Below, in pieces: positions 35,052-59,487 of a stretch of 64,000 nt of DNA. The stretch lies in the sequence record NC_019526.1; one strand, written 5' to 3'. The notes below the pieces were generated by a model, which saw nothing but the letters and a program-made list of their open reading frames with translations, ran no database searches and was not told where the DNA came from. The position numbers were made by a program, and so were the translations under genes. How positions within the stretch are numbered: the first letter of the stretch is position 1; the number at the start of each line of letters is the position of its first letter.

Positions 35052-35642
35052 ATGTATCACAATGAAACAATAGAGCTATTTGAAATAATCAACTCATTTG
35101 AGCCGGAGATGTTAAAAACATTACCCAGTTATGATGTACAACACAACGGACGTTCTTTCAGTTATATTTCAACATATGCAGAATCAGAACATCCAATAAA
35201 ATACAACGAATTTACGGTTAAATGGGTAACAGAAAGGGAAGATGAAGTTGTACCAACTATTTCAGTTGGTTCTTCAACTTTAACATCATTGACTCGTACT
35301 TACAATAATGTCAGTACTGATTTATTGAATACTTGTACAGTACTTGTATCAAGTGATTTATCCAGATTGATTTCAGTACAATGGGAAATGGGCTTGAATA
35401 GCAATATGATTTACCCACAGGCTATGATTAGTTCTACAATTATTAAAAAAACAACATCTGAAATGAAATTGATGAATGCGTTGTATTTGCGAAATGAAAG
35501 TGTATTAATTAATGGTGTACTTTATGATTTAAATGCAAATGCAAATGCATTCACTGAAGATATTAGTGATGATAAATCACATTTTTCTATACTAAACGTC
35601 ATTAATTTAAGGAACATTTTTAATGAATTACGATTGGCTTGA
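35052..35642 (+). CDS. Hypothetical protein
   Basis: ORF; start moved to the ATG after the AGGTG RBS. Confidence 0.7.
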   Translation: MYHNETIELFEIINSFEPEMLKTLPSYDVQHNGRSFSYISTYAESEHPIKYNEFTVKWVTEREDEVVPTISVGSSTLTSLTRTYNNVSTDLLNTCTVLVSSDLSRLISVQWEMGLNSNMIYPQAMISSTIIKKTTSEMKLMNALYLRNESVLINGVLYDLNANANAFTEDISDDKSHFSILNVINLRNIFNELRLA

Positions 35643-36186
35643 AACCCTTATTAACGAATCATGTAATGCACTAAAAGAATATGATATTTCAGTGTTTTTC
35701 AATCCACTATTCAATGATCACAAATTTGAATCATTTGATATAGAAAAAAGAGATAATTTTATTATCTTAAAAAATGGTATTAGTCAGAAAGAAGTCGTGA
35801 CATATAAAAAGAATTCAAGTCCTTATAATATTAGTACTGCGATAGTTGGTAGTTCTGCGATAAATGGTAATATCAATGTTTATAACAAAAATCCATTTCA
35901 TGATGATTTACCTGATTATCACAGTATTGAGTATGTAAATTACACTTATTCATTTGTTTTCAGACAAGATGGTTTCATTGGGTTTGATGTAAAGAAAAAA
36001 TCAGAAACTTTATTGAATATTATTGTTGGAAATAGTGATATTTTGATATACAATGAAAATGGTTATAACTGGTACAACAAAGAAACATTTGAAGAATTTT
36101 CATTTCAAAATTCATTAATTGAACCAAGAAAAAATTTTGATTTATTTTATATTAATTCTGTACTTAAAAATTTTAAATTAGTTTAA
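35623..36186 (+). CDS. FQxS-motif family protein
   Basis: EEFSFQNSLIEP near the C-terminus. Confidence 0.7.
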   Translation: MNYDWLETLINESCNALKEYDISVFFNPLFNDHKFESFDIEKRDNFIILKNGISQKEVVTYKKNSSPYNISTAIVGSSAINGNINVYNKNPFHDDLPDYHSIEYVNYTYSFVFRQDGFIGFDVKKKSETLLNIIVGNSDILIYNENGYNWYNKETFEEFSFQNSLIEPRKNFDLFYINSVLKNFKLV

Positions 36187-36196
36187 GGATAATAAA

Positions 36197-36559
36197 ATGT
36201 GGTATATTATTAGTGTAGTAGTACTTTCTGTTTTGGTTGGTATTGTATTACTGAAAGGTGTAACGTATACAATGTCTAAAATAGACAAGTACCAGGAAAA
36301 TTCAGTAATCGATTTGTTTATTGATTACCCAAAAAGCATCATTGCTTTTCTGTTTGTTATGGTACTGATTGGTTTTTATATGGTATCTCATCAAATTGGA
36401 GAAATGTACACTTGTGCCATCCGAAGTAGTTCACAGAATGTAGAAACCGAATATAGTTGGTATTTTGATAAATGTCGCTTCAAAAATAAAGATGGTGCAT
36501 GGGTAGATATTGATCGTTTATTGGGTATGCCTGATGGCAAAGAACATGAACAACAATGA
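36197..36559 (+). CDS. Membrane protein
   Basis: Two hydrophobic segments. Confidence 0.7.
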   Translation: MWYIISVVVLSVLVGIVLLKGVTYTMSKIDKYQENSVIDLFIDYPKSIIAFLFVMVLIGFYMVSHQIGEMYTCAIRSSSQNVETEYSWYFDKCRFKNKDGAWVDIDRLLGMPDGKEHEQQ

Positions 36560-37070
36560 ACATAAATTCTTCATAGAGCCAGAAGATGAAATAGACTATT
36601 TTGATGCAATAGACAGTACTGAAGATGGATATACACATATCAATATATATAGTAAAGGTAAAACTAAATTAGGACGCGATTTATCTAATTTTAGTCCCTA
36701 TAGTTTTACGCTTGAACCATATGGATGGTTTCCATCAGTAGAGTCATTTTATTTCTGGTTTTTAACTGGACAAAAACACCATGAGCTACGTAAGCTCTCT
36801 GGGGCGGCAGCTAAGGCTGCCGCGGAAAAGTATACCCATGATAGGCTTGAGATGACCGATGAGCGTCTTGTTGTGATACAGGCCGCTATTTGTGCCAAGA
36901 TAGCACAGAACCCCGACTTAGCAGAGCGTTTAAAGAAAAGTACATTAGCTTTTAAGCATTATTATTGCTATGGTACTAAAGTAATAAACGTGGAAGATGA
37001 ACATGGGTGGTTTGTTCAAACAATCGAAGATATAAGGACTGTATTAAAAGAAGGAGATGAACATGAATAA
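36546..37070 (+). CDS. NADAR-family protein (T4 gp30.3-like)
   Basis: LSNFSPYSF..., PSVESFY, LSGAAAK, AKIAQNPDLAERLKKS...KH. Confidence 0.65.
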   Translation: MNNNEHKFFIEPEDEIDYFDAIDSTEDGYTHINIYSKGKTKLGRDLSNFSPYSFTLEPYGWFPSVESFYFWFLTGQKHHELRKLSGAAAKAAAEKYTHDRLEMTDERLVVIQAAICAKIAQNPDLAERLKKSTLAFKHYYCYGTKVINVEDEHGWFVQTIEDIRTVLKEGDEHE

Positions 37071-37296
37071 TACACAGTTTGAATCATTTGATATAGAGAG
37101 TATATTAAAACCAACTGATAACTGTACTGTACTTATGAATATGTACTGGATAGTCAAAGATGAAAAAGTCTTTAGATCATTACGAACTAAAGTATGGCAA
37201 TGCAATAAATTTGAGAGTGTAGTTAAACATGTAATCGAATCTTATCCTGGTTGTGAGGTTCGTTTTCTTGAATATGCTTATGTAAAGAAGGATTGA
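37057..37296 (+). CDS. Hypothetical protein
   Basis: 79 aa ORF, GGAG RBS. Confidence 0.7.
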   Translation: MNMNNTQFESFDIESILKPTDNCTVLMNMYWIVKDEKVFRSLRTKVWQCNKFESVVKHVIESYPGCEVRFLEYAYVKKD

Positions 37297-37739
37297 TTAT
37301 GAAATATTATATGGTAACGGAAGGTGATTCGAGTGGTATTCATTTTTTATGGTCTTATTATGAATTGCTTGACTGTTGCACAGTAGAAGATGCAGAAGAT
37401 TTATACAGAGAAGAAAATGGATATTCACTGGATGCACCTTATGGATTGAGAATTTATAGTAAAGAAATTACAGAAAAAGAATATCATGATGGATTGCATT
37501 TTAACGATTATTATGGTGTTAGAACGCTAATTACCGAATTGATGTTTAAAAATAACATTTTCCCACTAAAAAGTTGGGCTTTAATGTTTGCAAATCCAAA
37601 AAAACCTGTTAGAATAGGGTTTCCTGGTTCACATCTAGTCTATCGTATGAATGATAAACGAGAGCTTAGCTACCAGTATGATTATGATTCACATAAGTTT
37701 GGTCTTCTACCAGCATTTAAAGGTTTGACAAATGAGTAA
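37293..37739 (+). CDS. Hypothetical protein
   Basis: 148 aa ORF, coupled. Confidence 0.7.
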   Translation: MIMKYYMVTEGDSSGIHFLWSYYELLDCCTVEDAEDLYREENGYSLDAPYGLRIYSKEITEKEYHDGLHFNDYYGVRTLITELMFKNNIFPLKSWALMFANPKKPVRIGFPGSHLVYRMNDKRELSYQYDYDSHKFGLLPAFKGLTNE

Positions 37740-38067
37740 AGATTCATTAGAATTTATTTTACGTTGTGATTGTGGTGAAAAATCAGATCATGTAATTCAC
37801 ATTGCACAGTACGATCTAGACGAAGAGTACGGTGATAATAAACTTGGCACTTGTTTAATCAGTGCTCGTTTAGAACCATGTAAAACATGGTATGAACGTG
37901 TTTGGATTGGTATCAAATACATCTTTGGTTACAATAGTTATCAGTATATGGATACAATGGTTGATGTTGATATCCTACGTGAAGTAGTACAACAGTTAAA
38001 AGATGAACGTTCAGAAGAAGACAAAAAAGCTTCTCGTGAAAAACGCTCAGAGGTTAAGGTTCTATGA
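37732..38067 (+). CDS. Hypothetical protein
   Basis: 111 aa; CDC...H and WYERVWIGIKYIFGY motif common in phage ORFs. Confidence 0.75.
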   Translation: MSKDSLEFILRCDCGEKSDHVIHIAQYDLDEEYGDNKLGTCLISARLEPCKTWYERVWIGIKYIFGYNSYQYMDTMVDVDILREVVQQLKDERSEEDKKASREKRSEVKVL

Positions 38068-38258
38068 GTGTGTTATTTGAAAAGAAATATTGTACTAAAT
38101 GCTTGACAGCTTATACAATTCAGGGTATGATTTGTTGCTCAAACTGTCAAAGCACAGATGCTCAAACGTTTTTGGTTGATGATCGTTACACCGATTTAAT
38201 TCAATTCAAAGCGAATCGAAATTTAAAACATTTTAGTGCTTTACACGACAAAGATTGA
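38064..38258 (+). CDS. Small zinc-ribbon protein
   Basis: CxxC...CxxC. Confidence 0.6.
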   Translation: MSVLFEKKYCTKCLTAYTIQGMICCSNCQSTDAQTFLVDDRYTDLIQFKANRNLKHFSALHDKD

Positions 38259-38303
38259 ATGCTATAATCATCTTAACTTAAACAAAAACAGGAATTACTT
38301 TAT

Positions 38304-38795
38304 ATGACTAACGTTAATACCAATCTAGTAACTGATATCAAAAAAGTTGTTACTTCACATCATTTCTTTGCACCAGAAAAACAACGAGTCATCTCTGATA
38401 TCAAAGAAGATGAACTGAGTATTATTATTCGTTTTAAAGAACCCGGTGATGAAATTTCATCACAGTTCACTGTACTTCGTGGTAAATTCCGCGAAGAAGG
38501 CGTTGACAAGATCCCAGCTTACATTCTTTTTATTACACTTGGTAGTGTAATTAAGCTGGAAATTGATGAAAATCTGGAGCGTTCATATAAATTCATGCTT
38601 GCACCAGTTACAGATGATGATAACATTGAACTGGATTTCAAGAATGATTTCACTGAAGAAGAATTCTTTCAGCAAAGTACAATCCATGATTTCCGTTCAG
38701 TAACTTATGAGCATGTCGAACTTATCAAAGATATGATTGAACCAGTTACCAGTTACGAGAAATATCTCGATGGTCAAGCTGAAGGCAACGAATAA
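38304..38795 (+). CDS. FQxS-motif family protein
   Basis: EEEFFQQSTIHD. Confidence 0.8.
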   Translation: MTNVNTNLVTDIKKVVTSHHFFAPEKQRVISDIKEDELSIIIRFKEPGDEISSQFTVLRGKFREEGVDKIPAYILFITLGSVIKLEIDENLERSYKFMLAPVTDDDNIELDFKNDFTEEEFFQQSTIHDFRSVTYEHVELIKDMIEPVTSYEKYLDGQAEGNE

Positions 38796-38800
38796 AAATA

Positions 38801-38827
38801 AATAACCCACTTCGGTGGGTTATTTTC
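38801..38827 (+). terminator. Rho-independent terminator
   Basis: AATAACCCAC-TTCG-GTGGGTTATT-TT. Confidence 0.75.
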
Positions 38828-38845
38828 TATATAAGGATATAAATT

Positions 38846-39403
38846 ATGTTAAAAGAAATTCAAAAATTAACAAATTCAATTGTAGATTTTCTTAAAGATA
38901 AAAATGGTTTTAGTACTGAAGTATCAAAACAAGGTGTTCAGCTAATCGTTAAAAATCCTAATGGTACTGAAACTTTGTATGATGTTTATGAATTGCTTTT
39001 ATATAAACTTAGTGCTAATAAACTAGGCGGTGATATTCAGTTAAACATTAATGATAGTACTGAGGGTAAGATTTTTGCAATTAACACGAATGTAAATTTT
39101 GATATTCATTCCAAAATCCTCGAAATTAATAATTCATTTGATGATTACAAACACGACACTATTCGTGGTGTTTTTGTTAGTACTCAATTGTCTGAAAGTA
39201 CAAATCCATTTTCGGTACTAACCATGTATAAAAATGGTACATGGGTTCGTTACGATTTAACACTGTCGGAATTACTGTACGCTTGTGTAAATGGGTATAA
39301 ATTACAATTGAACGATTCAGGTTTTGTATACAATGAATTACGTGAATTGTGTGAAAATGTAAAAAAAGAAATGAAGCAAGAAGAAAATACAATATCCAAA
39401 TAA
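38846..39403 (+). CDS. Hypothetical protein
   Basis: 185 aa ORF. Confidence 0.75.
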   Translation: MLKEIQKLTNSIVDFLKDKNGFSTEVSKQGVQLIVKNPNGTETLYDVYELLLYKLSANKLGGDIQLNINDSTEGKIFAINTNVNFDIHSKILEINNSFDDYKHDTIRGVFVSTQLSESTNPFSVLTMYKNGTWVRYDLTLSELLYACVNGYKLQLNDSGFVYNELRELCENVKKEMKQEENTISK

Positions 39404-39419
39404 TGAGGTAGATCTCTGT

Positions 39420-39842
39420 ATGACATTACATGAAGTACTGAATAGTTTCTTTGAATTGAATATTTCAGAAATGAAAACCAAACAAAATAGACACCAACAT
39501 AGTGTTTGGTATGATGCCCAACCACAACCGTTTTTAATCAATTTTAAAGAAACAGAAACATACACAATAATGAGATTTCATCATTTTGATGGTGAAAATA
39601 ATTACAGGGTATCATATGATGCAGGAACTGATCGACTGATTTACACAGTAATGGGTACAATTTCATCAACCATTACGATTGGAAACTTCTCTTCTTATAA
39701 ATCAGAAGATAATTTTTTTCAGGATTCACTGATTAATGATTACAATGATTTATCATTCGAAGATATTGACAAAATGATGAATATGTTCTATAATGTAAAA
39801 AATACAAGTTTATCCCTATTTGGTGAAGATGATGAAATTTGA
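39420..39842 (+). CDS. FQxS-motif family protein
   Basis: EDNFFQDSLIND. Confidence 0.75.
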   Translation: MTLHEVLNSFFELNISEMKTKQNRHQHSVWYDAQPQPFLINFKETETYTIMRFHHFDGENNYRVSYDAGTDRLIYTVMGTISSTITIGNFSSYKSEDNFFQDSLINDYNDLSFEDIDKMMNMFYNVKNTSLSLFGEDDEI

Positions 39843-40269
39843 TTTAGAAAAATTTCTGGATTTGGATTTAGATTCATTTTATATCAGAAAGTTTATTTTT
39901 AAACCACACACAAATGTGGTTGATTATGCTGTGATTGAACTACATGAATCAGACTATACAATTTGGTACGATGTTGATGATTGTATTCAACTAAAGGAAT
40001 GTGATGAATGTAAAGGTTATGTTCTGTTGTATGACCTCAATACAAATGAAATTACATTAAAAACTTCACATTATGATGAATACGGTATTATAACAAGACG
40101 TGAATGTGTTGCATTTTCACATGATGATTACACAGAAGAATCATTTTTTATGATTAGTACCTTACATGATGTTGGGGAATTTACATTTGAAACTTTCGAT
40201 AAATTTAATAAAATTTTGAAAAAGATTAAATCAATGATAAAGGAAATTGAAAATGAACAGTCCAAGTAA
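39829..40269 (+). CDS. FQxS-motif family protein
   Basis: EESFFMISTLHD. Confidence 0.75.
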   Translation: MMKFDLEKFLDLDLDSFYIRKFIFKPHTNVVDYAVIELHESDYTIWYDVDDCIQLKECDECKGYVLLYDLNTNEITLKTSHYDEYGIITRRECVAFSHDDYTEESFFMISTLHDVGEFTFETFDKFNKILKKIKSMIKEIENEQSK

Positions 40270-40666
40270 ATGTTATATTGTTATTCGTAATGATTTGGAT
40301 ATGCCAGAAGGTAAATTTGGTGCACAAATCGGTCATGGCATCGACGCGGTATGGAAAGAGGTTTTGGTAGCCGGTACAATGGTGCGTGCTGCAAATATAG
40401 CCAATGAACAACCAAAAGAGCGTGATATCAAAATACAGGATGAAATTTCTAAATGGGTGAGTGATGGTAGTAGAAAGATTATTCTAAAAACAAAATCAGA
40501 AGACGAATTACTGAAAATTTATAAAAAGGTATTGTCTGAAGGTTGTATTTGTACTAAAATTTATGATTACGGATTTAATTTTTTTGATGGTTTAACTTTA
40601 ACTGGTATTGTTGTACATCCATGTTCAGAAGAAATTAAAACATTAAAACGAGTACGCTTATGGTAA
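40253..40666 (+). CDS. Peptidyl-tRNA hydrolase type 2 (PTH2)
   Basis: IVIRNDLDMPEGKFGAQIGH, W...G.RKIILK, LTLTGI. Confidence 0.85.
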   Translation: MNSPSKCYIVIRNDLDMPEGKFGAQIGHGIDAVWKEVLVAGTMVRAANIANEQPKERDIKIQDEISKWVSDGSRKIILKTKSEDELLKIYKKVLSEGCICTKIYDYGFNFFDGLTLTGIVVHPCSEEIKTLKRVRLW

Positions 40667-41034
40667 ATGAACATTTAAAAGAATTATGTTCTTTATGGAA
40701 ATCATCTGATGTAAGATTTGAACCTGTACCCAAAAATAAAGATAACTGGCATAATTCTATTGTTATGGGGTCTTGTGGTTTTTTTCTTTTACCTATGGTA
40801 CTAAAAGATAAAAAAATAGGTATTGTTGTTTTATACAATGATCTTATATATTATTTTTTGTACGAAGATGAAATTCAGTACGTACATAATAATATGACAC
40901 ATACATATAAAAGAGATACCACACATGAAGAACTATTCCAACTAAGTACTTTATACGATGGAGTAATTCAGTACGAAAACTTAATAGAAGTTTTTAACTT
41001 ATATGATTCCGTAATGGAGGTAATTGAAAGATGA
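40660..41034 (+). CDS. FQxS-motif family protein
   Basis: EELFQLSTLYD. Confidence 0.75.
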   Translation: MVNEHLKELCSLWKSSDVRFEPVPKNKDNWHNSIVMGSCGFFLLPMVLKDKKIGIVVLYNDLIYYFLYEDEIQYVHNNMTHTYKRDTTHEELFQLSTLYDGVIQYENLIEVFNLYDSVMEVIER

Positions 41035-41372
41035 TGAGTCATTGTAAATTCTGGCTTCCTGTTATGGTTGTTCTGTTTATTATTTTTACAGTAGTAAACT
41101 ATAAAATCCACAATTCTATTCCAAGACAGCCTACAGCAGAAGAATTAGCTATTCATCAAAATAGTGGTTTATATGCTGAAGTACTCAATAAAATCAAAAA
41201 CAAATGTACTGGTATCAGTGATAATGAAAGGAATACATTCTATACATGTCAGGACGGTTCTAAAGTATCAGTGATTTACTGGAAACGACAAGATAGAAGT
41301 GGGTATGTCACTCGTGATTTTGATAAAAATGGTAAATTAATTTCGATTTATGGACACCCAGATGATATCTAA
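41031..41372 (+). CDS. Membrane-anchored hypothetical protein
   Basis: N-terminal TM. Confidence 0.7.
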   Translation: MMSHCKFWLPVMVVLFIIFTVVNYKIHNSIPRQPTAEELAIHQNSGLYAEVLNKIKNKCTGISDNERNTFYTCQDGSKVSVIYWKRQDRSGYVTRDFDKNGKLISIYGHPDDI

Positions 41373-41814
41373 AGAACAACATAAATTTTTATTCAAAATA
41401 TTGAATTCTTATAAAGTTAATAAGTTCAGTACTAAACACGTTCACAATCCAAAAATTGTTATTAGCACAAGGCGATATATAGGAAATAACAATTTTGAAA
41501 TATACTTATATAAAGGAACTATTTCATTAGAAATTCAAAGATATGGTATTATTTTATTATTAATTGAGTATAATCCAATTTCTGACAATATGACGTTATT
41601 ATTCAATGATAATGAACATTGTTCTGAAATCGTTTATCGTATAAACGATGTGTCGGAAATTCTTGAAGAAGATGGTTATTTTCAACAAAGTCTTGTACAA
41701 AATCTTCCATTGGAATATAATGATTTTTGTAAAATGATGGATGATATCACAACCATCAAAAATTCAATGCTGGAACGTTTTGAGTTAACAGAGCAAGTGT
41801 GCGACAATGACTAA
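41350..41814 (+). CDS. FQxS-motif family protein
   Basis: EEDGYFQQSLVQN. Confidence 0.75.
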   Translation: MDTQMISKEQHKFLFKILNSYKVNKFSTKHVHNPKIVISTRRYIGNNNFEIYLYKGTISLEIQRYGIILLLIEYNPISDNMTLLFNDNEHCSEIVYRINDVSEILEEDGYFQQSLVQNLPLEYNDFCKMMDDITTIKNSMLERFELTEQVCDND

Positions 41815-42061
41815 AGTAGTTAGAAAGCGTAGAGTACTTGATAATGATGAATTCAAATCATTAGAGATTCATCGTCAATTGTTTCACCGTCTTTGTGCTG
41901 GCGAGAAACAAATTGTAGTTACTGAAACATATGAAGAACCAGAAAATATTTTCGGTAACTATTTCCCTGTATTCAATTTGTATATTAAACGCGGTCTATT
42001 GGAAGTAATTACAATAGATCAGTTACCGGAAGATGAACATGAATTTACTGTTATCAAATAA
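41807..42061 (+). CDS. Hypothetical protein
   Basis: 84 aa ORF. Confidence 0.65.
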   Translation: MTKVVRKRRVLDNDEFKSLEIHRQLFHRLCAGEKQIVVTETYEEPENIFGNYFPVFNLYIKRGLLEVITIDQLPEDEHEFTVIK

Positions 42062-42122
42062 AGAACCATTAGATCGTGATGATGATTTTTATGATGAACG
42101 TTATGGTGAATCGGAGGAATAA

Positions 42123-42677
42123 ATGGGATTAGATATCTATAAATGTAAAATTAGTTCTACTAAACAAGAACATGGTTTTATTACATGTTCACAAGAAGAG
42201 ATTGATTCAAATAAATCAATTAAAGAACTATTCCAGAAATATAAAAATTATATCAATATCGGCACTGAAGAATACATTGATATTGAACAAAGTTTAATCA
42301 AATTTAATCTTTCTGATGAATGGTTTTTATCTGGATATGAGTTCAATGAAGATGAGGATTCATATTATGCAGTATTTGATTGTACTCTACCATTGTTCGA
42401 TTCCGTAAAAGTATTATATAATGAACTCATCACAAAAGATGAAAAAGTTTATACATTATATTACACAGAAATTGGCTATCAACGTAGAGATTATAAACCC
42501 GGAATCTATGCTGATCTTTGGGGATGTGACCATGAAGAACACGACGGATATTACAGCTTAAATGTTGTAACAGATAATTCAGTACTTGAACTTGTTAAAA
42601 TGTATGCGAATGAAAATTCTCCACTTAGTCAATGGGTACTAAACGATAATGATGAATTTATTATCTTCGATTATTGA
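42123..42677 (+). CDS. Hypothetical protein
   Basis: MGLD start motif, GGAGG RBS. Confidence 0.75.
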   Translation: MGLDIYKCKISSTKQEHGFITCSQEEIDSNKSIKELFQKYKNYINIGTEEYIDIEQSLIKFNLSDEWFLSGYEFNEDEDSYYAVFDCTLPLFDSVKVLYNELITKDEKVYTLYYTEIGYQRRDYKPGIYADLWGCDHEEHDGYYSLNVVTDNSVLELVKMYANENSPLSQWVLNDNDEFIIFDY

Positions 42678-42707
42678 GATTTCTAAATAAAATAAAACAT
42701 AACAAGG

Positions 42708-43601
42708 ATGTTTATGAAACCTATTACAGTACTGTCATTATTCAATGGGATGAGTGTTGGGTATATGGCACTAAAGAATGCTGGAATTCCAGTACAGAAA
42801 TATTACTCATCAGAAATTGATAAATTTGCTATTGCTGAATCACAAGCCAACTACCCTGATATTATTCAGTTAGGTGATATAACTAAATGGGAAGATTGGG
42901 ATATCGACTGGGGTAGTATTGACCTACTTATTGGTGGAAGTCCTTGTACTGATGTAAGTTTTGCGGGAAAACAAGAGGGGTTAGTGAAACCAGATGAAAA
43001 CGGTGATGGTGGAACAAGAAGTGGTTTATTTTATATAATGATTGACATATTCAATCATATTAAATCGATAAATCCAGATTTAAATTTTTTATTTGAAAAT
43101 GTCAAGATGAAAAAAGAACATCTTGAAGAATTTAATAATAATATAGGGGTTGATCCTGTTCTAATCAATTCTGAATTATATACTGCTCATTACAGACAGA
43201 GATATTACTGGATTAGCTCAAATAAGCTAATTCTCAATCCCACCTACAAAGCCCCAGTACTTCAAGATATTATTGTTAATGCATATACTGACAGGAATAA
43301 ATCATATTGCATTGATGCCAATTACTGGAAAAAGGGGAATATCACACAGTACTTACGCAAATCAAGAAGACAGATTGTTTATCTAAGAGACGATCATGAT
43401 TTATTCAGTACTGAAGAAAAAATTAACACATTTAAACTCAATGTTGACTATAGACATTTAACAGTAGACGAAGTATGTTTATTACAGGGTGTACCTGTTG
43501 GATTTTTTAAAGTAAGTAGTGCAACACAAGCATACAAAATGCTAGGTAATGGATGGACATGTCCAGTTATTGAACATCTATTAAAGGAAATTTTCTTTTA
43601 A
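42708..43601 (+). CDS. DNA (cytosine-5) methyltransferase
   Basis: LSLFNGM (motif I), GGSPC (IV), FENV (VI), RQRYYW (VIII), LGNGW (X). Confidence 0.92.
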   Translation: MFMKPITVLSLFNGMSVGYMALKNAGIPVQKYYSSEIDKFAIAESQANYPDIIQLGDITKWEDWDIDWGSIDLLIGGSPCTDVSFAGKQEGLVKPDENGDGGTRSGLFYIMIDIFNHIKSINPDLNFLFENVKMKKEHLEEFNNNIGVDPVLINSELYTAHYRQRYYWISSNKLILNPTYKAPVLQDIIVNAYTDRNKSYCIDANYWKKGNITQYLRKSRRQIVYLRDDHDLFSTEEKINTFKLNVDYRHLTVDEVCLLQGVPVGFFKVSSATQAYKMLGNGWTCPVIEHLLKEIFF

Positions 43602-43630
43602 TTAATAATTTAAAATGGAAAATAATATCA

Positions 43631-43840
43631 ATGATTAGTAAAGTATACCTTGATGAAAATATTTCTAACGAAAAGACACAATATGCAGTTTATGATTCCT
43701 TGACTGATAAAGTACTAACAGAGAGTATTCATTCTTATAAAGCAGATGTTGAAGATTTTATGACACACAAATATGGTGCTGACTGGCGTACAACACATGC
43801 ATTATATAGTATTCGTGAAATTAAAATCGTAGTGTTATAA
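43631..43840 (+). CDS. Hypothetical protein
   Basis: 69 aa ORF. Confidence 0.65.
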   Translation: MISKVYLDENISNEKTQYAVYDSLTDKVLTESIHSYKADVEDFMTHKYGADWRTTHALYSIREIKIVVL

Positions 43841-43860
43841 ACATAAAAAATCCACCACAT

Positions 43861-44331
43861 GTGGATTTTTTTCTATTTGAGATTAAATTAAACATGCACA
43901 ATGAAGAAATAATTCATTTTCTTAAATTTTATTTAAAATGTATCAATGCTGTTCAAAAATTAATGGAATGTGAAATGATTAATGATTTTAATGATCATTT
44001 TGGATATATAAGTACAGATTTATATCCCGTCCCTGTTCGTGCAAAATGGAATTATGATCAAGATGCATATGCAATGCAACTGGATTTTGATTTATTCGGA
44101 CTACCATCTAAATTTAATATAGAAACTATTTGTTTTGATAAAAATGATGGTTTGATTTTAATTTGTTATAACAATAAAACAGAAGTTGATTTAAAATACA
44201 GAGAATGGTTAACCGAAGAATCGTATTTTCAGTCCTCATTAATTTATGATTTGGGTAGTACTGATTTACAGTACTGGAAAAAATGCATTGATTTATTTGA
44301 AAAGATTGAAGGAGTAATGACAGGTGTTTAA
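43861..44331 (+). CDS. FQxS-motif family protein (paralog of 53747..54196)
   Basis: WLTEESYFQSSLIYDLGSTDLQYWKKCI; start uncertain. Confidence 0.75.
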   Translation: MDFFLFEIKLNMHNEEIIHFLKFYLKCINAVQKLMECEMINDFNDHFGYISTDLYPVPVRAKWNYDQDAYAMQLDFDLFGLPSKFNIETICFDKNDGLILICYNNKTEVDLKYREWLTEESYFQSSLIYDLGSTDLQYWKKCIDLFEKIEGVMTGV

Positions 44332-44719
44332 AATAAAACTAATTTATACCACCGGCGATACATTCGAAACACGTGAAGTAGAAAGATTTATTAATTGCGA
44401 ATGGGATACAGAAGAGAAAGCTATTCATGAAATGAATAAAATCCGAGAGCACTGGATTTTTAATAAAAAAATTAGTTCTACTCGTGATAAAGGCACAAAG
44501 AAGAGATTGGTATCACAAGCTATTATGCAATCATGGTATAAACCTGGTAATTCTGAATATACTATGCTGCTAGTTGATAATGATGGAAATTCTTTTGAGA
44601 TGTATGCTGCATGGTTAGGGTATTTTGAAATTCTTCATAGTACTGAAGTAGTCAATACAAACCAATTAGACAACTATATTGATTTCGATGAATTAAGATC
44701 AAACATGGGATTGTGGTAA
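44324..44719 (+). CDS. Hypothetical protein
   Basis: IYTTGDTF...WLGYFEILHSTEV motif common in phage ORFs. Confidence 0.75.
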   Translation: MFKIKLIYTTGDTFETREVERFINCEWDTEEKAIHEMNKIREHWIFNKKISSTRDKGTKKRLVSQAIMQSWYKPGNSEYTMLLVDNDGNSFEMYAAWLGYFEILHSTEVVNTNQLDNYIDFDELRSNMGLW

Positions 44720-45153
44720 TGAATGGTCCAACTGTACTAAAAATCCTTCGTAAATTTAAACACCCAATATTGGTCGGTCGCTGGAAATCATTAAAAGAAA
44801 ATAAAAATACCGACGATCAAAAAAATATCAATTATAGATGGTATTGGGATTATTCTAAAGATTATGGTGATTCACTTTGTGTAAAAATTAAATTCAATAA
44901 TTATAATAAATGGTCTAGAGATAAAAAATATGTATATTCATATGATATTCACTTATCAAAGGAACATGTATTTATTTTTCATAGAAGTTACAACAAATTT
45001 TCAACTAAACATTATGTACTATTTTCTATAAATGAATTATATGAAGATTTAGAAAGTGTATTATTTCAGCAATCATTATTGACTTCTACTGGTATGGTGA
45101 GTACTCAAGAAATTGAAGTACTTAAAGAATTAAAAGATATATATTTTACATAA
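44713..45153 (+). CDS. FQxS-motif family protein
   Basis: ESVLFQQSLL. Confidence 0.7.
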   Translation: MVMNGPTVLKILRKFKHPILVGRWKSLKENKNTDDQKNINYRWYWDYSKDYGDSLCVKIKFNNYNKWSRDKKYVYSYDIHLSKEHVFIFHRSYNKFSTKHYVLFSINELYEDLESVLFQQSLLTSTGMVSTQEIEVLKELKDIYFT

Positions 45154-45172
45154 TACAAATTGAGGATAATAA

Positions 45173-45700
45173 ATGTTTGGTATTTTATATAAATGCAATG
45201 ATGGTAGAGACTATTATTGTACGTCTTCGAGATTTGCACATTTCTCAGAAGATATTGAATCGATTGCTGAATTTGCACAACAAAAAACTGCTGAAAAAAT
45301 TGCAAACCATTTTACCAAAACAAATGATTTTGAAGAATTATATGGTACTGGTAAATTGTTAGTGATTAAAGTAGTTAAAGTACCTTTAAGTCTAAAGGAA
45401 ATTCCATTGATTAAACTAAAATCTGGATACCGAATTTATTCAGAAGAAAATGATGAATATTATAGTGGTAATAAAAATCCAAAAAGTTTCAATCATTTAA
45501 ATCTTGATGATTTACATTGTAGTACTGTTTATAAGTCAGAAAAAGAAGCACAAAAAACGATTGATGCTATGATTAAAGAATTTTATGATTATGCATTCAA
45601 CACTTATGAACCAGGTCATAGTCGTTATGAATATCACGTAAAGATATATGAAACAGATTACCTCATTGCTTCTAAATTAAAAATTGTTTATATTGAATAA
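45173..45700 (+). CDS. Hypothetical protein
   Basis: 175 aa ORF, GAGG RBS. Confidence 0.75.
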   Translation: MFGILYKCNDGRDYYCTSSRFAHFSEDIESIAEFAQQKTAEKIANHFTKTNDFEELYGTGKLLVIKVVKVPLSLKEIPLIKLKSGYRIYSEENDEYYSGNKNPKSFNHLNLDDLHCSTVYKSEKEAQKTIDAMIKEFYDYAFNTYEPGHSRYEYHVKIYETDYLIASKLKIVYIE

Positions 45701-45705
45701 AAAGC

Positions 45706-45733
45706 TTGACATATAAATTGACAATGATATAAT
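45706..45733 (+). promoter_or_regulatory. Sigma70 promoter TTGACA-16-TATAAT
   Basis: Direct motif match. Confidence 0.6.
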
Positions 45734-45763
45734 AATTGCAAATCAACCAAAGAGTGAATTTGT

Positions 45764-46003
45764 ATGAAATATTATAATGGCTTTAGTGATATTGGTGTAA
45801 AGTTTGAAAATGGTAAAGGATACTATTTCCATGGTATGTCACCTTGGATTGAAACCAATGTATCTGAAGGATTAATTAAGTCCCTTGCATACTATAAAAA
45901 ACTTAATGAATATGATATTCCTATGCGTGAAAAATCATCATTCAGTACTTCAATCGTTGATAACAAAGATCTTCTTATGGAGAAATTTAATGCCTTATCG
46001 TAA
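45764..46003 (+). CDS. Hypothetical protein
   Basis: 79 aa ORF. Confidence 0.7.
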   Translation: MKYYNGFSDIGVKFENGKGYYFHGMSPWIETNVSEGLIKSLAYYKKLNEYDIPMREKSSFSTSIVDNKDLLMEKFNALS

Positions 46004-50580: not shown

Positions 50581-51479
<899 letters not shown>

Positions 51480-51700: not shown

Positions 51701-52192
51701 GGAGGCGACTGTATTCAGTACTGAATCAATTGATCGTTGCGTAATCAGATTCAGTTAGCGTAGTATTAGCTGGGACGCGTACTTGTGAGCCGCAACCACA
51801 ACGTACTTAAAATCCAACGCGTGGAGGGTAAGCATTCTGTACTGAATAGCAGAAGGGCTACAAAAACTTATACTTCAAAAAGGTTCGGGAAGTATTCGTA
51901 ATAAACCGTTTAATCGTCTTATCAGTGCTATGAACAACCAATATATTTGTGGTGGATATTATTGGACTCAAGTAGATGATGTTATCTTTGTACGCTTTCT
52001 AACCAAAAGGTCAGATAATAAAAATGTAAGAAAATTTCAGTACTGATAGCTGGAACCTTACTATAGTAAAAAGACCTGATATGACTCGCTTAGGTCTTTA
52101 AATTATATAATGCGAGGGACGCTACGCCTTAGTTTAGGGCTAAATCGTAAGGATTGCGTACTAAACCGCCTTGAGAGTCCCAAGGCAACTTT
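51701..52192 (+). ncRNA. Candidate large multi-pseudoknot ncRNA (~490 nt)
   Basis: GC-enriched, no long ORF; many hairpins; H-type pseudoknot 52070-52116; terminal hairpin followed by a U run. Confidence 0.6.
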
Positions 52193-52302
52193 TAATTTAA
52201 ATGAATTTGTACAAAACACAAAAAGGTGATATAATGATTCTATCTGAAGAAGATTGGGGTGTTTATCCTAAAGACGAATTTGATGGATTTTAATAAAAAA
52301 TC

Positions 52303-52486: not shown

Positions 52487-52574
52487 GGCCGTATGTCCAA
52501 ATTGGTAAAGGAGACAGACTTAAAATCTGTTGGTGATATTCACCTTCTCGATTCGAGTTCGAGTGCGGCTACCA
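52487..52574 (+). tRNA. trnL: tRNA-Leu(TAA)
   Basis: Cloverleaf GGCCGTA/TGCGGCT, anticodon loop CTTAAAA, long variable arm, encoded CCA. Confidence 0.92.
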
Positions 52575-52603: not shown

Positions 52604-52927
52604 ATGTGTACTGAAGCAAGAAGATATGTTTATATTTTGGTTCGCAAAGATTTAGAACTAAAGGATATTATTGTTCAAACTGCTCATGCTTCATATGAAA
52701 GTGCAAAAGAATTCAAAAATAATGCTGATAGAACATCTATTATAGTTTTAGAAGTCAAAGACTTATACAAACTAAATGATGCTAAAAGTTATTTAAATTC
52801 TAATGGTATTAATTGGACTGTGTATACTGAAAAATCTTTAGGATTTGGAGAAACTGCTATCAGTACTGAAGCACTCAATAACGAACAACGAAAAATTATG
52901 CGTAAGTTCCAATTATTGAAAGTATAA
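52604..52927 (+). CDS. PTH2-like peptidyl-tRNA hydrolase (second copy)
   Basis: YVYILVRKDL...VQTAHAS...IIVLEV...ETAIST. Confidence 0.7.
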   Translation: MCTEARRYVYILVRKDLELKDIIVQTAHASYESAKEFKNNADRTSIIVLEVKDLYKLNDAKSYLNSNGINWTVYTEKSLGFGETAISTEALNNEQRKIMRKFQLLKV

Positions 52928-52940: not shown

Positions 52941-53016
<76 letters not shown>

Positions 53017-53117: not shown

Positions 53118-53127
53118 AAAGTTTTAC

Positions 53128-53185: not shown

Positions 53186-53370
53186 TCCACAATCAGACGT
53201 ATATGGTGTAAGTTACGTCGATGAAATCCAGAACAAGATCTCTGGTACTCTAGGAAGTGGTGAATGTTAACCTAGACGGGCTTGTTAATTGGACGATAAG
53301 CAATTAATACTTGACTAGCAGGTTTAAATTAGAGGTGACTGTCCTTCACTATACTGGAAAACCGGATGGA
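53186..53370 (+). ncRNA. Candidate structured ncRNA (~185 nt) with pseudoknot
   Basis: Four hairpins; loop TGGTGAA can pair with TTCACTA at 53345. Confidence 0.5.
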
Positions 53371-53388
53371 TTTTTAATTAAAAAAGTG

Positions 53389-53417
53389 TTGAACAAAATG
53401 TTCAATAATGATATAAT
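53389..53417 (+). promoter_or_regulatory. Promoter TTGAAC-17-TATAAT containing the inverted repeat TTGAAC-N5-GTTCAA
   Basis: Repeated at 54264, 54432 and 54639. Confidence 0.7.
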
Positions 53418-53423
53418 AATTAT

Positions 53424-53505
53424 CAATGTAAGGCGTGGAACAATGTTTACAGAAGTTACTTAGTAGCCTGTACGCCCCACGTCAAGGTAGCCGAAAGGCA
53501 AGTTT
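53424..53505 (+). ncRNA. Candidate structured ncRNA (~80 nt)
   Basis: GGCGTGG/CCACGTC, TACAG/CTGTA, GCC-GAAA-GGC; starts right after a promoter. Confidence 0.45.
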
Positions 53506-53746: not shown

Positions 53747-54196
53747 ATGAATATCACTAATGTAAAAGATTTTTTAGAATATTTTATTAAGAATACTCGT
53801 GCACGTGATGAATTAGAAAAGAATGGATTCATCCAAGGTTACGATTGCACTAATTTCTTTTATACTATTGATAAACATGAATATTATGTCGATGCAATTT
53901 TAATTGATGATGATGGGTATTGCGTTGGATTTTCATTCGAAGATATATCACAAGATGCACCAATAAACTTTTATGCATTATATTATAATAAAAAAGATAA
54001 TATTTTGAAATTAGGATTTACTCGTGAATCAGATGAAGATGTTGTATTCGATTGTAACACATGGTTGGAACATGATTCATTCTTTCAAAGTACATTAATT
54101 CATAACTTTATGACAACAGATTTAGAGTACTGGAAAAATTGCATAGAATTACTTAATGTAATTTATAATGAACAAATCAAACAAAAATGGCAATAA
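53747..54196 (+). CDS. FQxS-motif family protein (paralog of 43861..44331)
   Basis: WLEHDSFFQSTLIHNFMTTDLEYWKNCI. Confidence 0.75.
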   Translation: MNITNVKDFLEYFIKNTRARDELEKNGFIQGYDCTNFFYTIDKHEYYVDAILIDDDGYCVGFSFEDISQDAPINFYALYYNKKDNILKLGFTRESDEDVVFDCNTWLEHDSFFQSTLIHNFMTTDLEYWKNCIELLNVIYNEQIKQKWQ

Positions 54197-54263
54197 TCAC
54201 AGGACGGTTCGGTATTTGGTAGTATGTTTGGCTGAATAAAGTATAAACGTTTAAAAAAAAGTG

Positions 54264-54291
54264 TTGAACAAAAAGTTCAGTACTATATAAT
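54264..54291 (+). promoter_or_regulatory. Promoter with TTGAAC-N5-GTTCAG inverted repeat
   Basis: Directly upstream of tRNA-Arg. Confidence 0.7.
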
Positions 54292-54376: not shown

Positions 54377-54431
54377 TACCATACAATATGGGAATAGTTA
54401 GAAGATATTCCCAATTTTAATTTAAAAAGTG

Positions 54432-54460
54432 TTGAACAAAAAGTTCAATAATGATATAAT
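54432..54460 (+). promoter_or_regulatory. Promoter with TTGAAC-N5-GTTCAA inverted repeat
   Basis: TTGAAC-17-TATAAT upstream of tRNA-Ser(GCT). Confidence 0.7.
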
Positions 54461-54524
54461 GGTATTATAAAAGGTTGTAATACTTAATATTAACTTTTAA
54501 GAAGATAATTAGTTATCATACACA

Positions 54525-54616: not shown

Positions 54617-54633
54617 TAAAATTCAATTAAAAA

Positions 54634-54767
<134 letters not shown>

Positions 54768-54825: not shown

Positions 54826-54846
54826 AAATTTTAATTTAAATAGTAC

Positions 54847-54875
54847 TTGACAAAAATGTTCAGTACTGATACATA
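54847..54875 (+). promoter_or_regulatory. Promoter TTGACA-17-TACATA
   Basis: Variant of the tRNA-cluster promoter repeat, upstream of tRNA(CAT). Confidence 0.5.
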
Positions 54876-54884: not shown

Positions 54885-54962
54885 GGCCCTTTACTCTCAA
54901 GTGGTTAGAGAATCCGACTCATAATCGGTAGGCTCTGAGTTCGAATCTCAGAAGGGCCACCA
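54885..54962 (+). tRNA. tRNA(CAT), probably Ile2 (lysidine) rather than Met
   Basis: GGCCCTT/AAGGGCC-ACCA acceptor and CGACTCATAATCG anticodon arm resemble E. coli ileX. Confidence 0.85.
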
Positions 54963-56066: not shown

Positions 56067-56068
56067 CA

Positions 56069-56157: not shown

Positions 56158-56160
56158 GGA

Positions 56161-56353
<193 letters not shown>

Positions 56354-56377
56354 TTAATTTAAATGGAGTACTGAATA

Positions 56378-56809: not shown

Positions 56810-56820
56810 TAATAAAATTG

Positions 56821-56851
56821 TAAGCTACCCTGTTATTTGGGTAGCTTTTTC
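56821..56851 (+). terminator. Rho-independent terminator
   Basis: AAGCTACCC-TGTTATTT-GGGTAGCTT-TTT. Confidence 0.75.
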
Positions 56852-56874
56852 TTTTTATATAACAAGAGATTATT

Positions 56875-57291
56875 ATGAGTAAATTAACTTTACTGAATAT
56901 TTTACAAGAATGCTATGAAAAACTTGAAAATTCCAATCCAAGTGTCATATTCAACTCATCATTTGATAATTATTCTACTTCAAATTATAAAGCAAAAATT
57001 TTAGTATATAATCACTTTGATTTATCATCATTAAGTGATTGTAGTAACATTTACTTACACATTTGTGACTACAATGATGATAGTGGGTATACTATGACGA
57101 TTGATATTTACAAAGGATATTTTTATTATAAAAATAAAAAATTTGACAATTTTGAAAATTTATTCCCATTGACTGAAGATACAATGTTTCAGTACTCAAC
57201 ACTTTATGACACATCCTCCTTGACAATGGATGAGTTAAATTTTATAATGTCTATTAGTTTGGATATTCCAATTTATGAAGCAGCATTATAA
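56875..57291 (+). CDS. FQxS-motif family protein
   Basis: TEDTMFQYSTLYD. Confidence 0.75.
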   Translation: MSKLTLLNILQECYEKLENSNPSVIFNSSFDNYSTSNYKAKILVYNHFDLSSLSDCSNIYLHICDYNDDSGYTMTIDIYKGYFYYKNKKFDNFENLFPLTEDTMFQYSTLYDTSSLTMDELNFIMSISLDIPIYEAAL

Positions 57292-57308
57292 AATCTAGGA
57301 GCATTTTT

Positions 57309-57461
57309 ATGAAAATTAAGTGTTGTGTATGTGATTGTGAAATTGATGAAAAGCATGTATATGGCGAATGGGATGATTACTGCTCTGATTGCTGGGAATC
57401 TGAAGGACGTGATACAGAACGTTGGGAAGATGAGAGCGAGTGGGATGAGGATGAAGAATGA
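57309..57461 (+). CDS. Small acidic zinc-binding protein (50 aa, not in the ORF track)
   Basis: MKIKCCVCDCEIDEKHVYGEWDDYCSDCWESEG...; GGAG RBS. Confidence 0.6.
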   Translation: MKIKCCVCDCEIDEKHVYGEWDDYCSDCWESEGRDTERWEDESEWDEDEE

Positions 57462-57607
57462 AAGACCAAAATTGGTTGGGTTGACCATCAAAAAGTATCA
57501 CTATGTGGTTCAAAGAAAGTCGCAGTAATGATACGGTGGGATATAAGAAGCGTATGTTAGAAGAGTTATCATCAACGTCAAGAAACTAATATTATCACGG
57601 AGAAAGT

Positions 57608-57928
<321 letters not shown>

Positions 57929-57942
57929 TGAATAGATTTATA

Positions 57943-58040
57943 GGACATACTGCGGGATCTGTTTTTAAGGCTTAGGTACTTCAGTACTAAAACAATACCT
58001 TAGAAACGGAGTCCAAGTTGAATTCTTGGAATGTCCACCA
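57943..58040 (+). ncRNA. 98-nt tRNA-like RNA (6-bp acceptor + 6-bp T stem, ACCA end)
   Basis: GGACAT/ATGTCC-ACCA; TCCAAG-TTGAATT-CTTGGA; 12-bp central helix. Confidence 0.65.
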
Positions 58041-58044
58041 AATT

Positions 58045-58118
58045 ACCGCCTTAGAACAATTGGTAGTGTAACTTGATTTGTAATCAGTAGGTTATATGTT
58101 CGAGTCAGATAGGTGGCA
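58045..58118 (+). pseudogene. Degenerate tRNA-Thr(TGT)
   Basis: Cloverleaf with TTTGTAA loop but mismatches in the acceptor, D, anticodon and T stems. Confidence 0.65.
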
Positions 58119-58284
58119 CAAATAATAATAGTACTAGTAAGGTTTATTTACAGTTATGGATTCTTCTTTATATTCTAGTACTATTTCGTTTTTTAATAAA
58201 CAATTCAAAACTTTATTTTTTTTAATTTACTTAGGCTGATTCATTGAATCGGCCATTTTCTTTGTTAACAAAAGAGATAAAAAT

Positions 58285-58692
58285 ATGAAAAAATTTCTTT
58301 CAAAAGAACACGAAGAAAATATTCTTAATGCATTGAGTGTATTTCCAGAGAGTGTTATAAGTAATAATAAGAATTCTACATATTACTATGGTAAAGGTAA
58401 TTGGTTTTATTTTAGCGACAGTTCATATATGTGTGTATTAAATCTATGTACTGAAGAATATTCTTATTGTTTAAGGATCGATCCTGGTCATAAATTAATC
58501 CTACTATGCGAAAAGAATGATGAATTTTATGAAAGTGATATAGATGATACTGATTCATATATTAGTGATTTTTATCTTGAAGAAGAAAATTATTTTATGG
58601 ATAGTACTGTGAATGAAATTACCATTCCTTTTAGTATAATGAAACGTTCATATGAATTTCTAAAATACAACAGAGAAAAATTTCATGACTGA
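58285..58692 (+). CDS. FQxS-motif family protein
   Basis: EEENYFMDSTVNE. Confidence 0.75.
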   Translation: MKKFLSKEHEENILNALSVFPESVISNNKNSTYYYGKGNWFYFSDSSYMCVLNLCTEEYSYCLRIDPGHKLILLCEKNDEFYESDIDDTDSYISDFYLEEENYFMDSTVNEITIPFSIMKRSYEFLKYNREKFHD

Positions 58693-59071
58693 TATAAATG
58701 AAGTTATCGAGCATTTTTATAATTGGGTACTAACGGATCCAATAAAAACTGGATTAATTGAAAAATATAACTGCTCTATGTATTCTTATTGTTCAAATAA
58801 AGCTACGATGTATAGTAAGGATGTTGATAATTATTTACTAATCACTGACGATGTAGTTTATGATGTATTTGACAATGAAATTGTCATTGATGGCAGTGAT
58901 GTTGATGGCAGTGATGTTGATATTGTAAAATTACATGATATGGATTTCTCATGTACTGAATCATCGGCGTTTCAATTAAGCACATTATATGATTTCCGAT
59001 GCAGTACTGAAAGTATTGTATTATTATTGAAAATAGTACATATTTTAAGAAAAAAGAGAATGGTATTATAA
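58685..59071 (+). CDS. FQxS-motif family protein
   Basis: TESSAFQLSTLYD. Confidence 0.75.
   Translation: MTDINEVIEHFYNWVLTDPIKTGLIEKYNCSMYSYCSNKATMYSKDVDNYLLITDDVVYDVFDNEIVIDGSDVDGSDVDIVKLHDMDFSCTESSAFQLSTLYDFRCSTESIVLLLKIVHILRKKRMVL
58887..58921 (+). repeat. 15-bp tandem duplication (DGSDV x2)
   Basis: TTGATGGCAGTGATG x2 plus TTGAT. Confidence 0.85.
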
Positions 59072-59487
59072 TGGTGGAATTTAAGGTTCAAGATTTTTAT
59101 GATTTTGTAATGAAAGCCGAAAAGAATAATCGTGAATATATTAAAACAATTGGGGATAATACATATCGACACTACTGTTATTCTTTAACGGAGGGAATGT
59201 CTGCATTTACAAATTCAACTATGGATAATGTATTATATAATTTATTAATGCATAATTGTCATTATGTATTTGATGTTTACAGTAATCAAATAATTTATAA
59301 AATTATATTTTTTGATAAAAAACAAATTGAAAATACAATTAATTTGGATTGTTATGATTCTGAATCAAAAGAAGGATTTGCTTTTCAGTTATCAGTTTCA
59401 TATGATTTCCCATTTAGTACTGAAGATTATATTTTAATGTTAAAGATTGTTGATAAATTAAGACTAAACGAAAGGAATTTCAAATGA
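59071..59487 (+). CDS. FQxS-motif family protein
   Basis: KEGFAFQLSVSYD. Confidence 0.7.
   Translation: MVEFKVQDFYDFVMKAEKNNREYIKTIGDNTYRHYCYSLTEGMSAFTNSTMDNVLYNLLMHNCHYVFDVYSNQIIYKIIFFDKKQIENTINLDCYDSESKEGFAFQLSVSYDFPFSTEDYILMLKIVDKLRLNERNFK

Follow-up and report, generated by a model that had tools for sequence, protein, structure and literature searches.

What kind of proteins are encoded by the many small, mutually dissimilar genes that crowd one part of a jumbo phage genome, and what does a short motif shared by a number of them stand for? The question is addressed here for a 64,000-nucleotide stretch of DNA, referred to as the window, which comprises bases 124001-188000 (+ strand) of the Klebsiella jumbo phage vB_KleM_RaK2 (JQ513383 / NC_019526), its positions 38000-46000 showing 100% identity to RaK2 162000-170000; positions are those of the window unless a phage genome or contig is named. 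RaK2 is a jumbo myovirus of the genus Alcyoneusvirus with a genome of 345,809 bp and 534 genes, and the region of the window is AT-rich (~31% G+C) and dense in small + strand open reading frames (ORFs). An earlier note, made from the letters alone, had drawn attention to about 15 such ORFs with a C-terminal motif E-E-x-x-F-Q-x-S-[TL]-[ILV]-x-D, and had read them as unrelated front ends joined to a constant tail. In RefSeq, all 15 are labelled hypothetical protein (ORF177, 184, 186, 187, 189, 191, 196, 198, 213, 214, 218, 223, 226, 227 and 228), the start being placed slightly downstream of that in the earlier note for four of them (43894, 44719, 50593 and 51000). As detailed below, 14 of these ORFs are members of one lineage-specific, massively expanded paralog family with ~50 copies per genome, arranged in two clusters.

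One paralog family in two gene clusters

All 15 ORFs were recovered on the + strand at the positions previously given, and their translations contain the quoted motif strings. The core motif F-[QM]-x-[SL]-[TLV] occurs in 14 of the 110 + strand ORFs of at least 60 aa, as compared to an expectation of 1.7 ± 1.3 (maximum 7) from 2000 residue shuffles, and in 1 of 54 minus-strand ORFs. The comparison with shuffled ORFs proposed in the earlier note is thus clearly in favour of the motif, and a chance motif is ruled out by the residue shuffles. A local iterative hidden Markov model (HMM) seeded with six of the ORFs recruited 12 at E<1e-20 and then stopped, with the three weaker ORFs (44713, 50581 and 35623 in the earlier numbering) ranking directly after these 12. 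The first of the three, ORF198, reached E 3e-6 with a broader profile and 5e-10 with a profile converged on the sister phage K64-1, and the second, ORF213, reached 7e-3 and 4e-6, respectively. Reversed and shuffled ORF sets provided no match below E 4e-3 (best 0.016 and 0.004). It should be noted that sequences inside the training alignment owe their E-values in part to their inclusion; the case for the family is therefore made by the stepwise recruitment in combination with the clean reversed and shuffled controls. The third weak ORF, ORF177, was not accepted as a family member, as it gave E ~0.01-0.02 with early profiles and was missing from the converged-profile matches. Homology accordingly extends to 14 of the 15 ORFs, with ORF177 unconfirmed.

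A recurring segment of this kind could also arise at the DNA or RNA level, as a nucleotide repeat, a recombination site or a regulatory signal, and both the recurrence itself and a mild excess of CAG for Gln (23/35) would agree with such an origin. Still, the motif Ser is encoded by both AGY (26) and TCN (12) codons, Gln by CAA (12) and CAG (23), the Glu and Phe codons vary too, the x positions differ freely, and the motif is always in frame within a coding-strand ORF. Since synonymous codons vary, selection is attributed to the protein and not to a DNA repeat. The codon variation refutes a DNA-level repeat, and we regard the chances of any nucleic acid element as next to nil. For reference, the 35 motif Gln codons are from RaK2 members, and CAG makes up 31% of the Gln codons in window genes.

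The count in RaK2 covers three stretches, namely the window, 188-238 kb and 243-279 kb, in which the converged profile identified 14, 3 and 31 members, respectively. These 48 members represent ~9% of the 534 genes, i.e. about one gene in 11 of a 346-kb phage belongs to one family. For K64-1 (AB897757; 99.4% identical in this region), taken as seven separate, unjoined 50-kb loci, profile iteration converged at 50 members among 1180 ORFs. In addition to the window-equivalent genes, ~30 further ORFs were recruited, nearly all with the same motif; most of these are arranged in tandem as a second cluster (245.7-275.9 kb), and single ones are scattered over other parts of the genome. The second cluster of RaK2 (245582-276060) is a tandem array of 31 motif-bearing ORFs of 111-224 aa and is larger than the window cluster. 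The family genes are clustered on the same strand and often overlap (window 38.3-59.5 kb; RaK2 245.6-276.1 kb), adjacent overlapping members including those at 39420/39829, 50593/51000 and 58285/58685/59071. The estimate of about 15 motif proteins therefore stands, with 14 confirmed, for the window, and is too low genome-wide. The RaK2 genome paper mentions that nearly 10% of the products are paralogues and contains nothing further on such a family (PMC3622015); likewise, no description of the family was found in the open-access literature searched.

Anatomy of the motif and predicted fold

Prediction of the fold depended on the depth of the alignment. With 12 paralogs alone, AlphaFold returned a poor model with a predicted local distance difference test score (pLDDT) of 63. 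A 59-sequence alignment gave a model of ORF186 with pLDDT 95.7 and a predicted template modelling score (pTM) of 0.87. The model comprises a helix (residues 3-11), seven consecutive strands within 19-87, a second helix (96-105) and a third one (113-133). The motif corresponds to helix 96-105 of the 140-residue protein (block pLDDT 96-98), plus the preceding residue and the following turn. In the model this helix sits between the sheet and the last helix, inside one compact domain, and forms no disordered or terminal segment. The amphipathic helix previously noticed after the motif is found as residues 113-133. Its reported distance of 20-45 aa from the C-terminus holds for most members, the corresponding distance of the invariant Phe being 28-57 residues among the 12 members scanned.

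Foldseek searches of BFVD retrieved an independent model of the same protein (H6X3Z3) with a template modelling (TM) score of 0.94, as well as full-length matches (TM 0.62-0.80) to two more RaK2 members and to proteins of Yersinia fHe-Yen9-03/04 and Cronobacter GAP32. These matches are all uncharacterised proteins of RaK2-like jumbo phages, and none is named. The two RaK2 members are ORF187, the model of which (H6X3Z4) superposes on that of ORF186 with TM 0.72 over 146 columns, and ORF214 (H6X421, TM 0.75). N-terminal-only profiles, built as a test of front-end homology, did not link the paralogs. The notion of unrelated N-terminal parts is thus correct at the level of sequence and fails at the level of fold for the members tested. 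A detachable constant tail is likewise at odds with an internal helix and with models that superpose over their full length. On the basis of the models we conclude that, in the window cluster, the motif is most plausibly a scaffold helix of one domain and that the front ends would be hyper-diverged versions of the same sheet. This agrees with the outcome that the earlier note had set against its own proposal, a buried core element of one ordinary domain, in so far as the motif helix is internal to a compact domain; its burial is something we infer.

The alignment of 59 sequences, with columns numbered on ORF186, shows where the constraint is concentrated. Information content peaks in the motif segment, residues 95-109, and identity outside the motif helix drifts to ~13-24% (mean column identity 13%). 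The segment opens with Thr (37 of 59) or Ser (11) at position 95, followed by Glu at 96 (53/59) and Glu (44) or Asp (11) at 97. Glu, Ser, Asn and Thr predominate at the low-information position 98, position 99 is aromatic or aliphatic, and Phe100 is present in 59/59. Position 101 is occupied by Gln (52) or Met (7), 103 by Ser (55/59), 104 by Leu or Thr (28 each) and 105 by Val, Ile or Leu (56/59). The segment ends with Asp (45) or Asn (10) at 107, Phe at 108 (26/57) and Gly at 109 (24/51). The low-information positions 98, 102 and 106 recur with a period of four, a pattern that by helical periodicity suggests one exposed stripe of the helix. A Ser/Thr N-cap and acidic residues in the first turn are ordinary helix capping features, and the residues at position 98 fit a helix capping box. 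Conversely, packing is suggested for position 101, where Met is the sole substitute for Gln, and for position 103, a small Ser in nearly all sequences. Across the 59 sequences the strands alternate between variable residues that point outwards and fully hydrophobic ones that point inwards (51/53, 62/64/66 and 73/75/77), indicating a sheet with one conserved inward and one variable outward face. The first helix is hydrophobic at positions 3, 6 and 7.

Taken together, a window-cluster protein is predicted to be a single small cytoplasmic domain, usually acidic, in which an antiparallel meander sheet of seven strands follows an N-terminal helix and precedes two helices at the C-terminus. The first of these two, together with its caps, would be the motif. 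It would begin with a Ser/Thr N-cap and two acidic residues and be closed by the Asp-aromatic-Gly turn, and its invariant Phe, its small Ser and its aliphatic residues would rest against the hydrophobic, conserved side of the sheet. Such packing and capping roles may explain why the helix survives while the rest of the protein drifts to the low identities given above. With regard to charge, the 15 window ORFs comprise 13 with acidic products, of pI 4.3-5.1 and a net charge between -5 and -16, and two with basic ones.

A predicted helix at this position also bears on the idea of proteolytic processing, in which a protease of the phage or the host would cut at the Gln-x-Ser stretch. The proposal is based on the superficial resemblance of the acidic-aromatic-Gln-Ser string to the sites of some Gln-specific proteases. 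It is hardly compatible with a location inside a helix of pLDDT >95, with the replacement of Gln by Met in 12% of the sequences, or with the absence of the proteins from virion proteome annotations, where substrates of a prohead protease are expected, and we consider it extremely improbable. This idea and that of a clamp-binding-type peptide were dropped because the segment is predicted to be a packed helix.

Possible roles of the family

For the function of the family we favour, at about even probability, an early-gene family of binders, expanded by duplication, in which the scaffold helix is conserved and the surface of the sheet is hypervariable. The members are probably early host-interaction proteins. 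The genes would be transcribed early by the host RNA polymerase, the hypervariable outer sheet face and the loops of each copy would recognise a different host, defence or competitor protein, and duplication with divergence would widen the panel of binders. Of the roles suggested before, that of a diversified anti-defence family comes closest: the proteins are small, diversified and non-virion, and a host-interaction or anti-defence role is likewise favoured here.

The promoter context is consistent with early expression. Sites matching at least 11 of the 12 positions of the sigma-70 consensus number 17 on the coding strand of the window and 2 on the other, with 3.4 expected per strand from the shuffled window, and 16 of the 17 coding-strand sites are located at or beyond 29.7 kb. 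The next 50 kb (RaK2 188001-238000) contain 6 such sites on the minus strand as compared to 25 on the + strand, of which 13 are perfect; a phage sigma-factor gene is located in the same stretch. In the related phage CBB, the equivalent region, with short ORFs, RpoD-like promoters and a sigma factor, was proposed to be an early host-takeover region (PMC5259590). In PA5oct, a distant relative, it is likewise mainly small uncharacterised genes that give rise to the early transcripts (PMC7318152).

Sequence divergence was followed in a metagenomic contig, L014 (Logan SRR33442307), which is syntenic with 48.9-64 kb of the window at 74-96% nucleotide identity and has the same gene order. The orthologs of six family members in L014 show a median identity of 60%, as compared to 75.5% for 18 neighbours (one-sided p 0.017), and an ortholog of ORF218 is missing from the contig. 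Between RaK2 and K64-1, identity amounts to 97.1% for the family and 98.9% for other genes (p 0.006). When the orthologs are divided into segments, identity is lowest in the N-terminal sheet part (58%), intermediate in the tail (65%) and highest in the motif (79%). As a side observation, positions 10001-11299 of L014 encode three consecutive genes of 146 aa each.

A virion-targeting or ejection tag, by which the motif would direct the proteins into the capsid for delivery to the cell, was likewise among the roles suggested before. Capsid-targeting sequences of the T4 type are N-terminal, the prohead protease removes them, and the proteins that carry them are present in virions. Like the motif, they are short conserved segments in otherwise dissimilar small phage proteins, and the analogy with the packaged T4-type internal proteins, along with the multi-copy, variable nature of the genes, is what speaks for a tag. 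The RaK2 motif differs in being an internal, folded helix in proteins that are absent from virion annotations. Specifically, 0 of the 48 RaK2 members are among the proteins annotated as virion structural from published virion mass spectrometry, whereas neighbours are (PMC3622015). In a concentrated lysate of phage fENko-Kae01, liquid chromatography-tandem mass spectrometry (LC-MS/MS) detected 220 phage proteins (PMC11218385); ~10 family members are encoded in a 40-kb stretch of this phage, none of them flagged by LC-MS/MS while many neighbours are flagged. The genes are also found among sigma-70 consensus promoters, apart from the structural genes. A capsid tag is thus highly improbable.

Several observations weigh against the early-binder reading. 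The faster divergence is modest, and the second cluster is no different from neighbouring small ORFs (p 0.34). All of the 47 RaK2 members tested have orthologs in K64-1, implying no recent turnover within the genus. The promoter matches are consensus hits and not mapped transcription starts, and binding, early expression and targets are all points that we infer. Burial of Glu96, Glu/Asp97, Gln101 and Asp107 is deduced from helical periodicity. In a comparison of the window and second clusters with hhalign, only 20 motif columns align (probability 95%, E 4e-8). The proteins of the second cluster, with lengths of up to 224 aa, are longer, and many of them have Tyr at motif positions 102 (11/23) and 106 (12/23). 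Finally, the conserved acidic residues lack a conserved basic partner inside the domain and would also fit an external shared ligand.

The last three points also speak for a shared docking helix, by which all paralogs would bind one common partner, of host or phage, via the conserved acidic-aromatic helix, the variable rest of each bringing a different target. In addition to the unpaired acidic residues, the motif as the only segment linking the two gene clusters and the subfamily-specific Tyr residues of cluster 2 on an otherwise variable face, strong conservation of polar columns is found despite the low mean identity (Glu96 90%, Glu/Asp97 93%, Gln/Met101 100%, Asp/Asn107 93%). Conversely, the confident model places the motif helix within a compact domain and not in a disordered tail or separate module. 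Replacement of Gln101 only by Met and a small, near-invariant Ser103 are typical of packing, the three low-information positions at a period of four fit an unconstrained exposed stripe in cluster 1, and the N-cap with its first-turn acidic residues is accounted for by ordinary capping. Moreover, no candidate hub was identified. On balance, we regard docking as unlikely. A slightly lower probability still is given to the ~50 paralogs as an adaptor system, a role also suggested in the earlier note, in which the shared helix would dock on a single hub, be it a protein of the phage or a machine of the host, and the sheets would capture different host or defence proteins. If true, such a system would be the phage equivalent of the modular families of substrate adaptors known from eukaryotes and from the large viruses that infect them.

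Returning to the early-binder reading, the family would, if its members are indeed early host-interaction proteins, represent a natural library of variants on one scaffold, which could be used to map the bacterial functions that a jumbo phage touches.

Relatives, comparisons and features of the locus

Database searches restrict the family to a narrow group of phages. In Pfam, 20 members were without a match at E<=0.1-1, searches of PDB by sequence were empty and those by profile gave nothing relevant even at E<=10, and Foldseek against PDB gave no match at E<=0.001. NCBIfam returned nothing meaningful, and PADLOC gave just three isolated weak matches among 59 members; no curated defence or counter-defence family was thereby assigned. 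A known domain or known fold was rejected on the basis of these searches. In PHROGs, each window member matches its own group at E 1e-48 to 1e-79 (phrog_23322, 24941, 24510, 21500, 17453, 27994, 22160 and 30841), with weak cross-matches via the motif region (27549, 24321, 38573, 12674, 13866 and 19795). The same proteins are thus present there, but split into more than 10 unlinked groups of unknown function in which motif, fold and the ~50 copies are unrecorded; here, these groups are joined into one family with a confidently predicted fold.

A word-index homolog search from the alignment gave only 6 close relatives. The exhaustive profile search of 1.84 billion representative proteins was more informative and returned only 61 at E<=1e-3, all of 81-217 aa and 58 of them with the motif. 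Matches in tblastn were confined to Klebsiella and Salmonella jumbo phages. A strict DNA pattern of the motif gave 3 chance matches without profile support in 185,579 cellular genomes, and a single metagenomic protein (P0047) had no match in viral contigs and no tblastn match in sequenced phages. In the searches made, the family is confined to one jumbo phage clade. It has no curated database name and no relative among solved structures, and the helix motif can serve as a simple annotation marker for RaK2-like genomes, which are explored as therapeutic phages against Klebsiella, Salmonella and E. coli.

Three known systems invite comparison. In p32, an N-terminal helix is followed by seven antiparallel strands and then by two helices at the C-terminus. 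The acidic mitochondrial matrix proteins p32/gC1qBP/MAM33 (PDB 1p32, 1yqf, 3jv1 and 3rpx) thus have the same order of elements, both groups are acidic, and p32/MAM33 chains are repeatedly among the top hits when PDB is searched by fold with either RaK2-family model. The match is insignificant (best E 0.25, TM-score 0.19-0.36, root-mean-square deviation 9-17 A), there is no Pfam or PDB sequence match between them, and the RaK2 proteins are 30-50 residues shorter. The likeness is one of topology only and does not amount to membership. The poxvirus Bcl-2-like proteins comprise many paralogs of one small fold with near-zero identity, each thought to bind a different host factor, and such multigene families of large eukaryotic DNA viruses are clustered in variable genome regions. 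This is an analogy of the way of working only, the fold being unrelated and the host domain different. A further case, among the lineage-specific expansions in jumbo phages, is a ~35-copy zinc-ribbon family of the Bacillus phage G, which a comparative survey called unprecedented (Iyer et al. 2021, PMC7824862). It is likewise one small domain at tens of copies, read as regulators or conflict proteins (PMC7824862). The RaK2 family differs in its fold, has no metal-binding residues and is present in more copies (48-50 versus ~35).

The individual features of the window are compiled in Table 1.

Table 1. Family members, motif segment, promoter-like sites and repeat cassettes in the window
Feature	Position	Strand	Details
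ORF177, membership unconfirmed	35623..36186	+	187 aa; motif-like string only
Sigma-70-type consensus site	38240..38268	+	11/12, extended -10 TG; 36 nt upstream of ORF184
ORF184, family member	38304..38795	+	163 aa, pI 4.6; E 4e-15; invariant Phe codon at 38667
ORF186, family member	39420..39842	+	140 aa, pI 4.6; modelled protein (pLDDT 95.7; BFVD H6X3Z3, TM 0.94)
Motif segment of ORF186, residues 95-109	39702..39746	+	N-cap Ser/Thr, helix 96-105, Asp-aromatic-Gly turn
Sigma-70-type consensus site	39766..39794	+	perfect 12/12; 35 nt upstream of ORF187
ORF187, family member	39829..40269	+	146 aa; 14-nt overlap with the end of ORF186
ORF189, family member	40660..41034	+	124 aa; E 3e-16
ORF191, family member	41350..41814	+	154 aa; E 2e-12
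ORF196, family member	43894..44331	+	145 aa from RefSeq start (earlier note: upstream GTG 43861); E 5e-20; nearest paralog ORF218 (E 4e-14)
ORF198, divergent family member	44719..45153	+	basic, pI 9.2; E 0.0045, 3e-6 and 5e-10 with successive profiles
ORF213, divergent family member	50593..50991	+	Leu for motif Ser; E 0.007, then 4e-6
ORF214, family member	51000..51479	+	159 aa, pI 9.7 (basic); Met for Gln; longer C-terminal tail
Cassette copies	52188-52249, 53368-53431, 54243-54288, 54411-54474, 54618-54681, 54826-54871
ORF218, family member	53747..54196	+	149 aa; motif variant shorter by one residue
ORF223, family member	56875..57291	+	138 aa; phrog_17453; metagenomic ortholog only 51% identical
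ORF226, family member	58285..58692	+	135 aa; first in a run of three adjacent overlapping members
ORF227, family member	58685..59071	+	128 aa; tandem paralog of ORF228 (E 4e-10)
ORF228, family member	59071..59487	+	138 aa

Some further observations concern the surroundings of the family genes. ARAGORN identified tRNA-Leu(taa) at 52487-52574, tRNA-Gly(tcc) at 52941-53016 and tRNA-Met(cat) at 54885-54962, which are missing from RefSeq; the tRNAs given by RefSeq in the same stretch are only Arg, Ser, Ser, Asn and Thr. A cassette of 46-62 nt is repeated just upstream of tRNA genes and small ORFs. It is composed of an A/T tract, a TTGAAC-type -35 element and an extended -10 element (TGATATAAT), and looks like a reiterated promoter. 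A second repeat family, of 70 nt, is found at 53122, 53503 and 54770. Two small ORFs resemble Pth2, the archaeal-type peptidyl-tRNA hydrolase, one in the family cluster (40247-40666) and one among the tRNA genes (52604-52927); the assignment is based on a RefSeq note and on a weak PF01981 match of the ortholog in L014. Finally, positions 41793-42059 are the sole part of 38-46 kb that is conserved at the DNA level (~77%) in Eneladusvirus jumbo phages of Erwinia and Serratia, and encode ORF192 (41807-42061), a protein of 84 aa outside the family.

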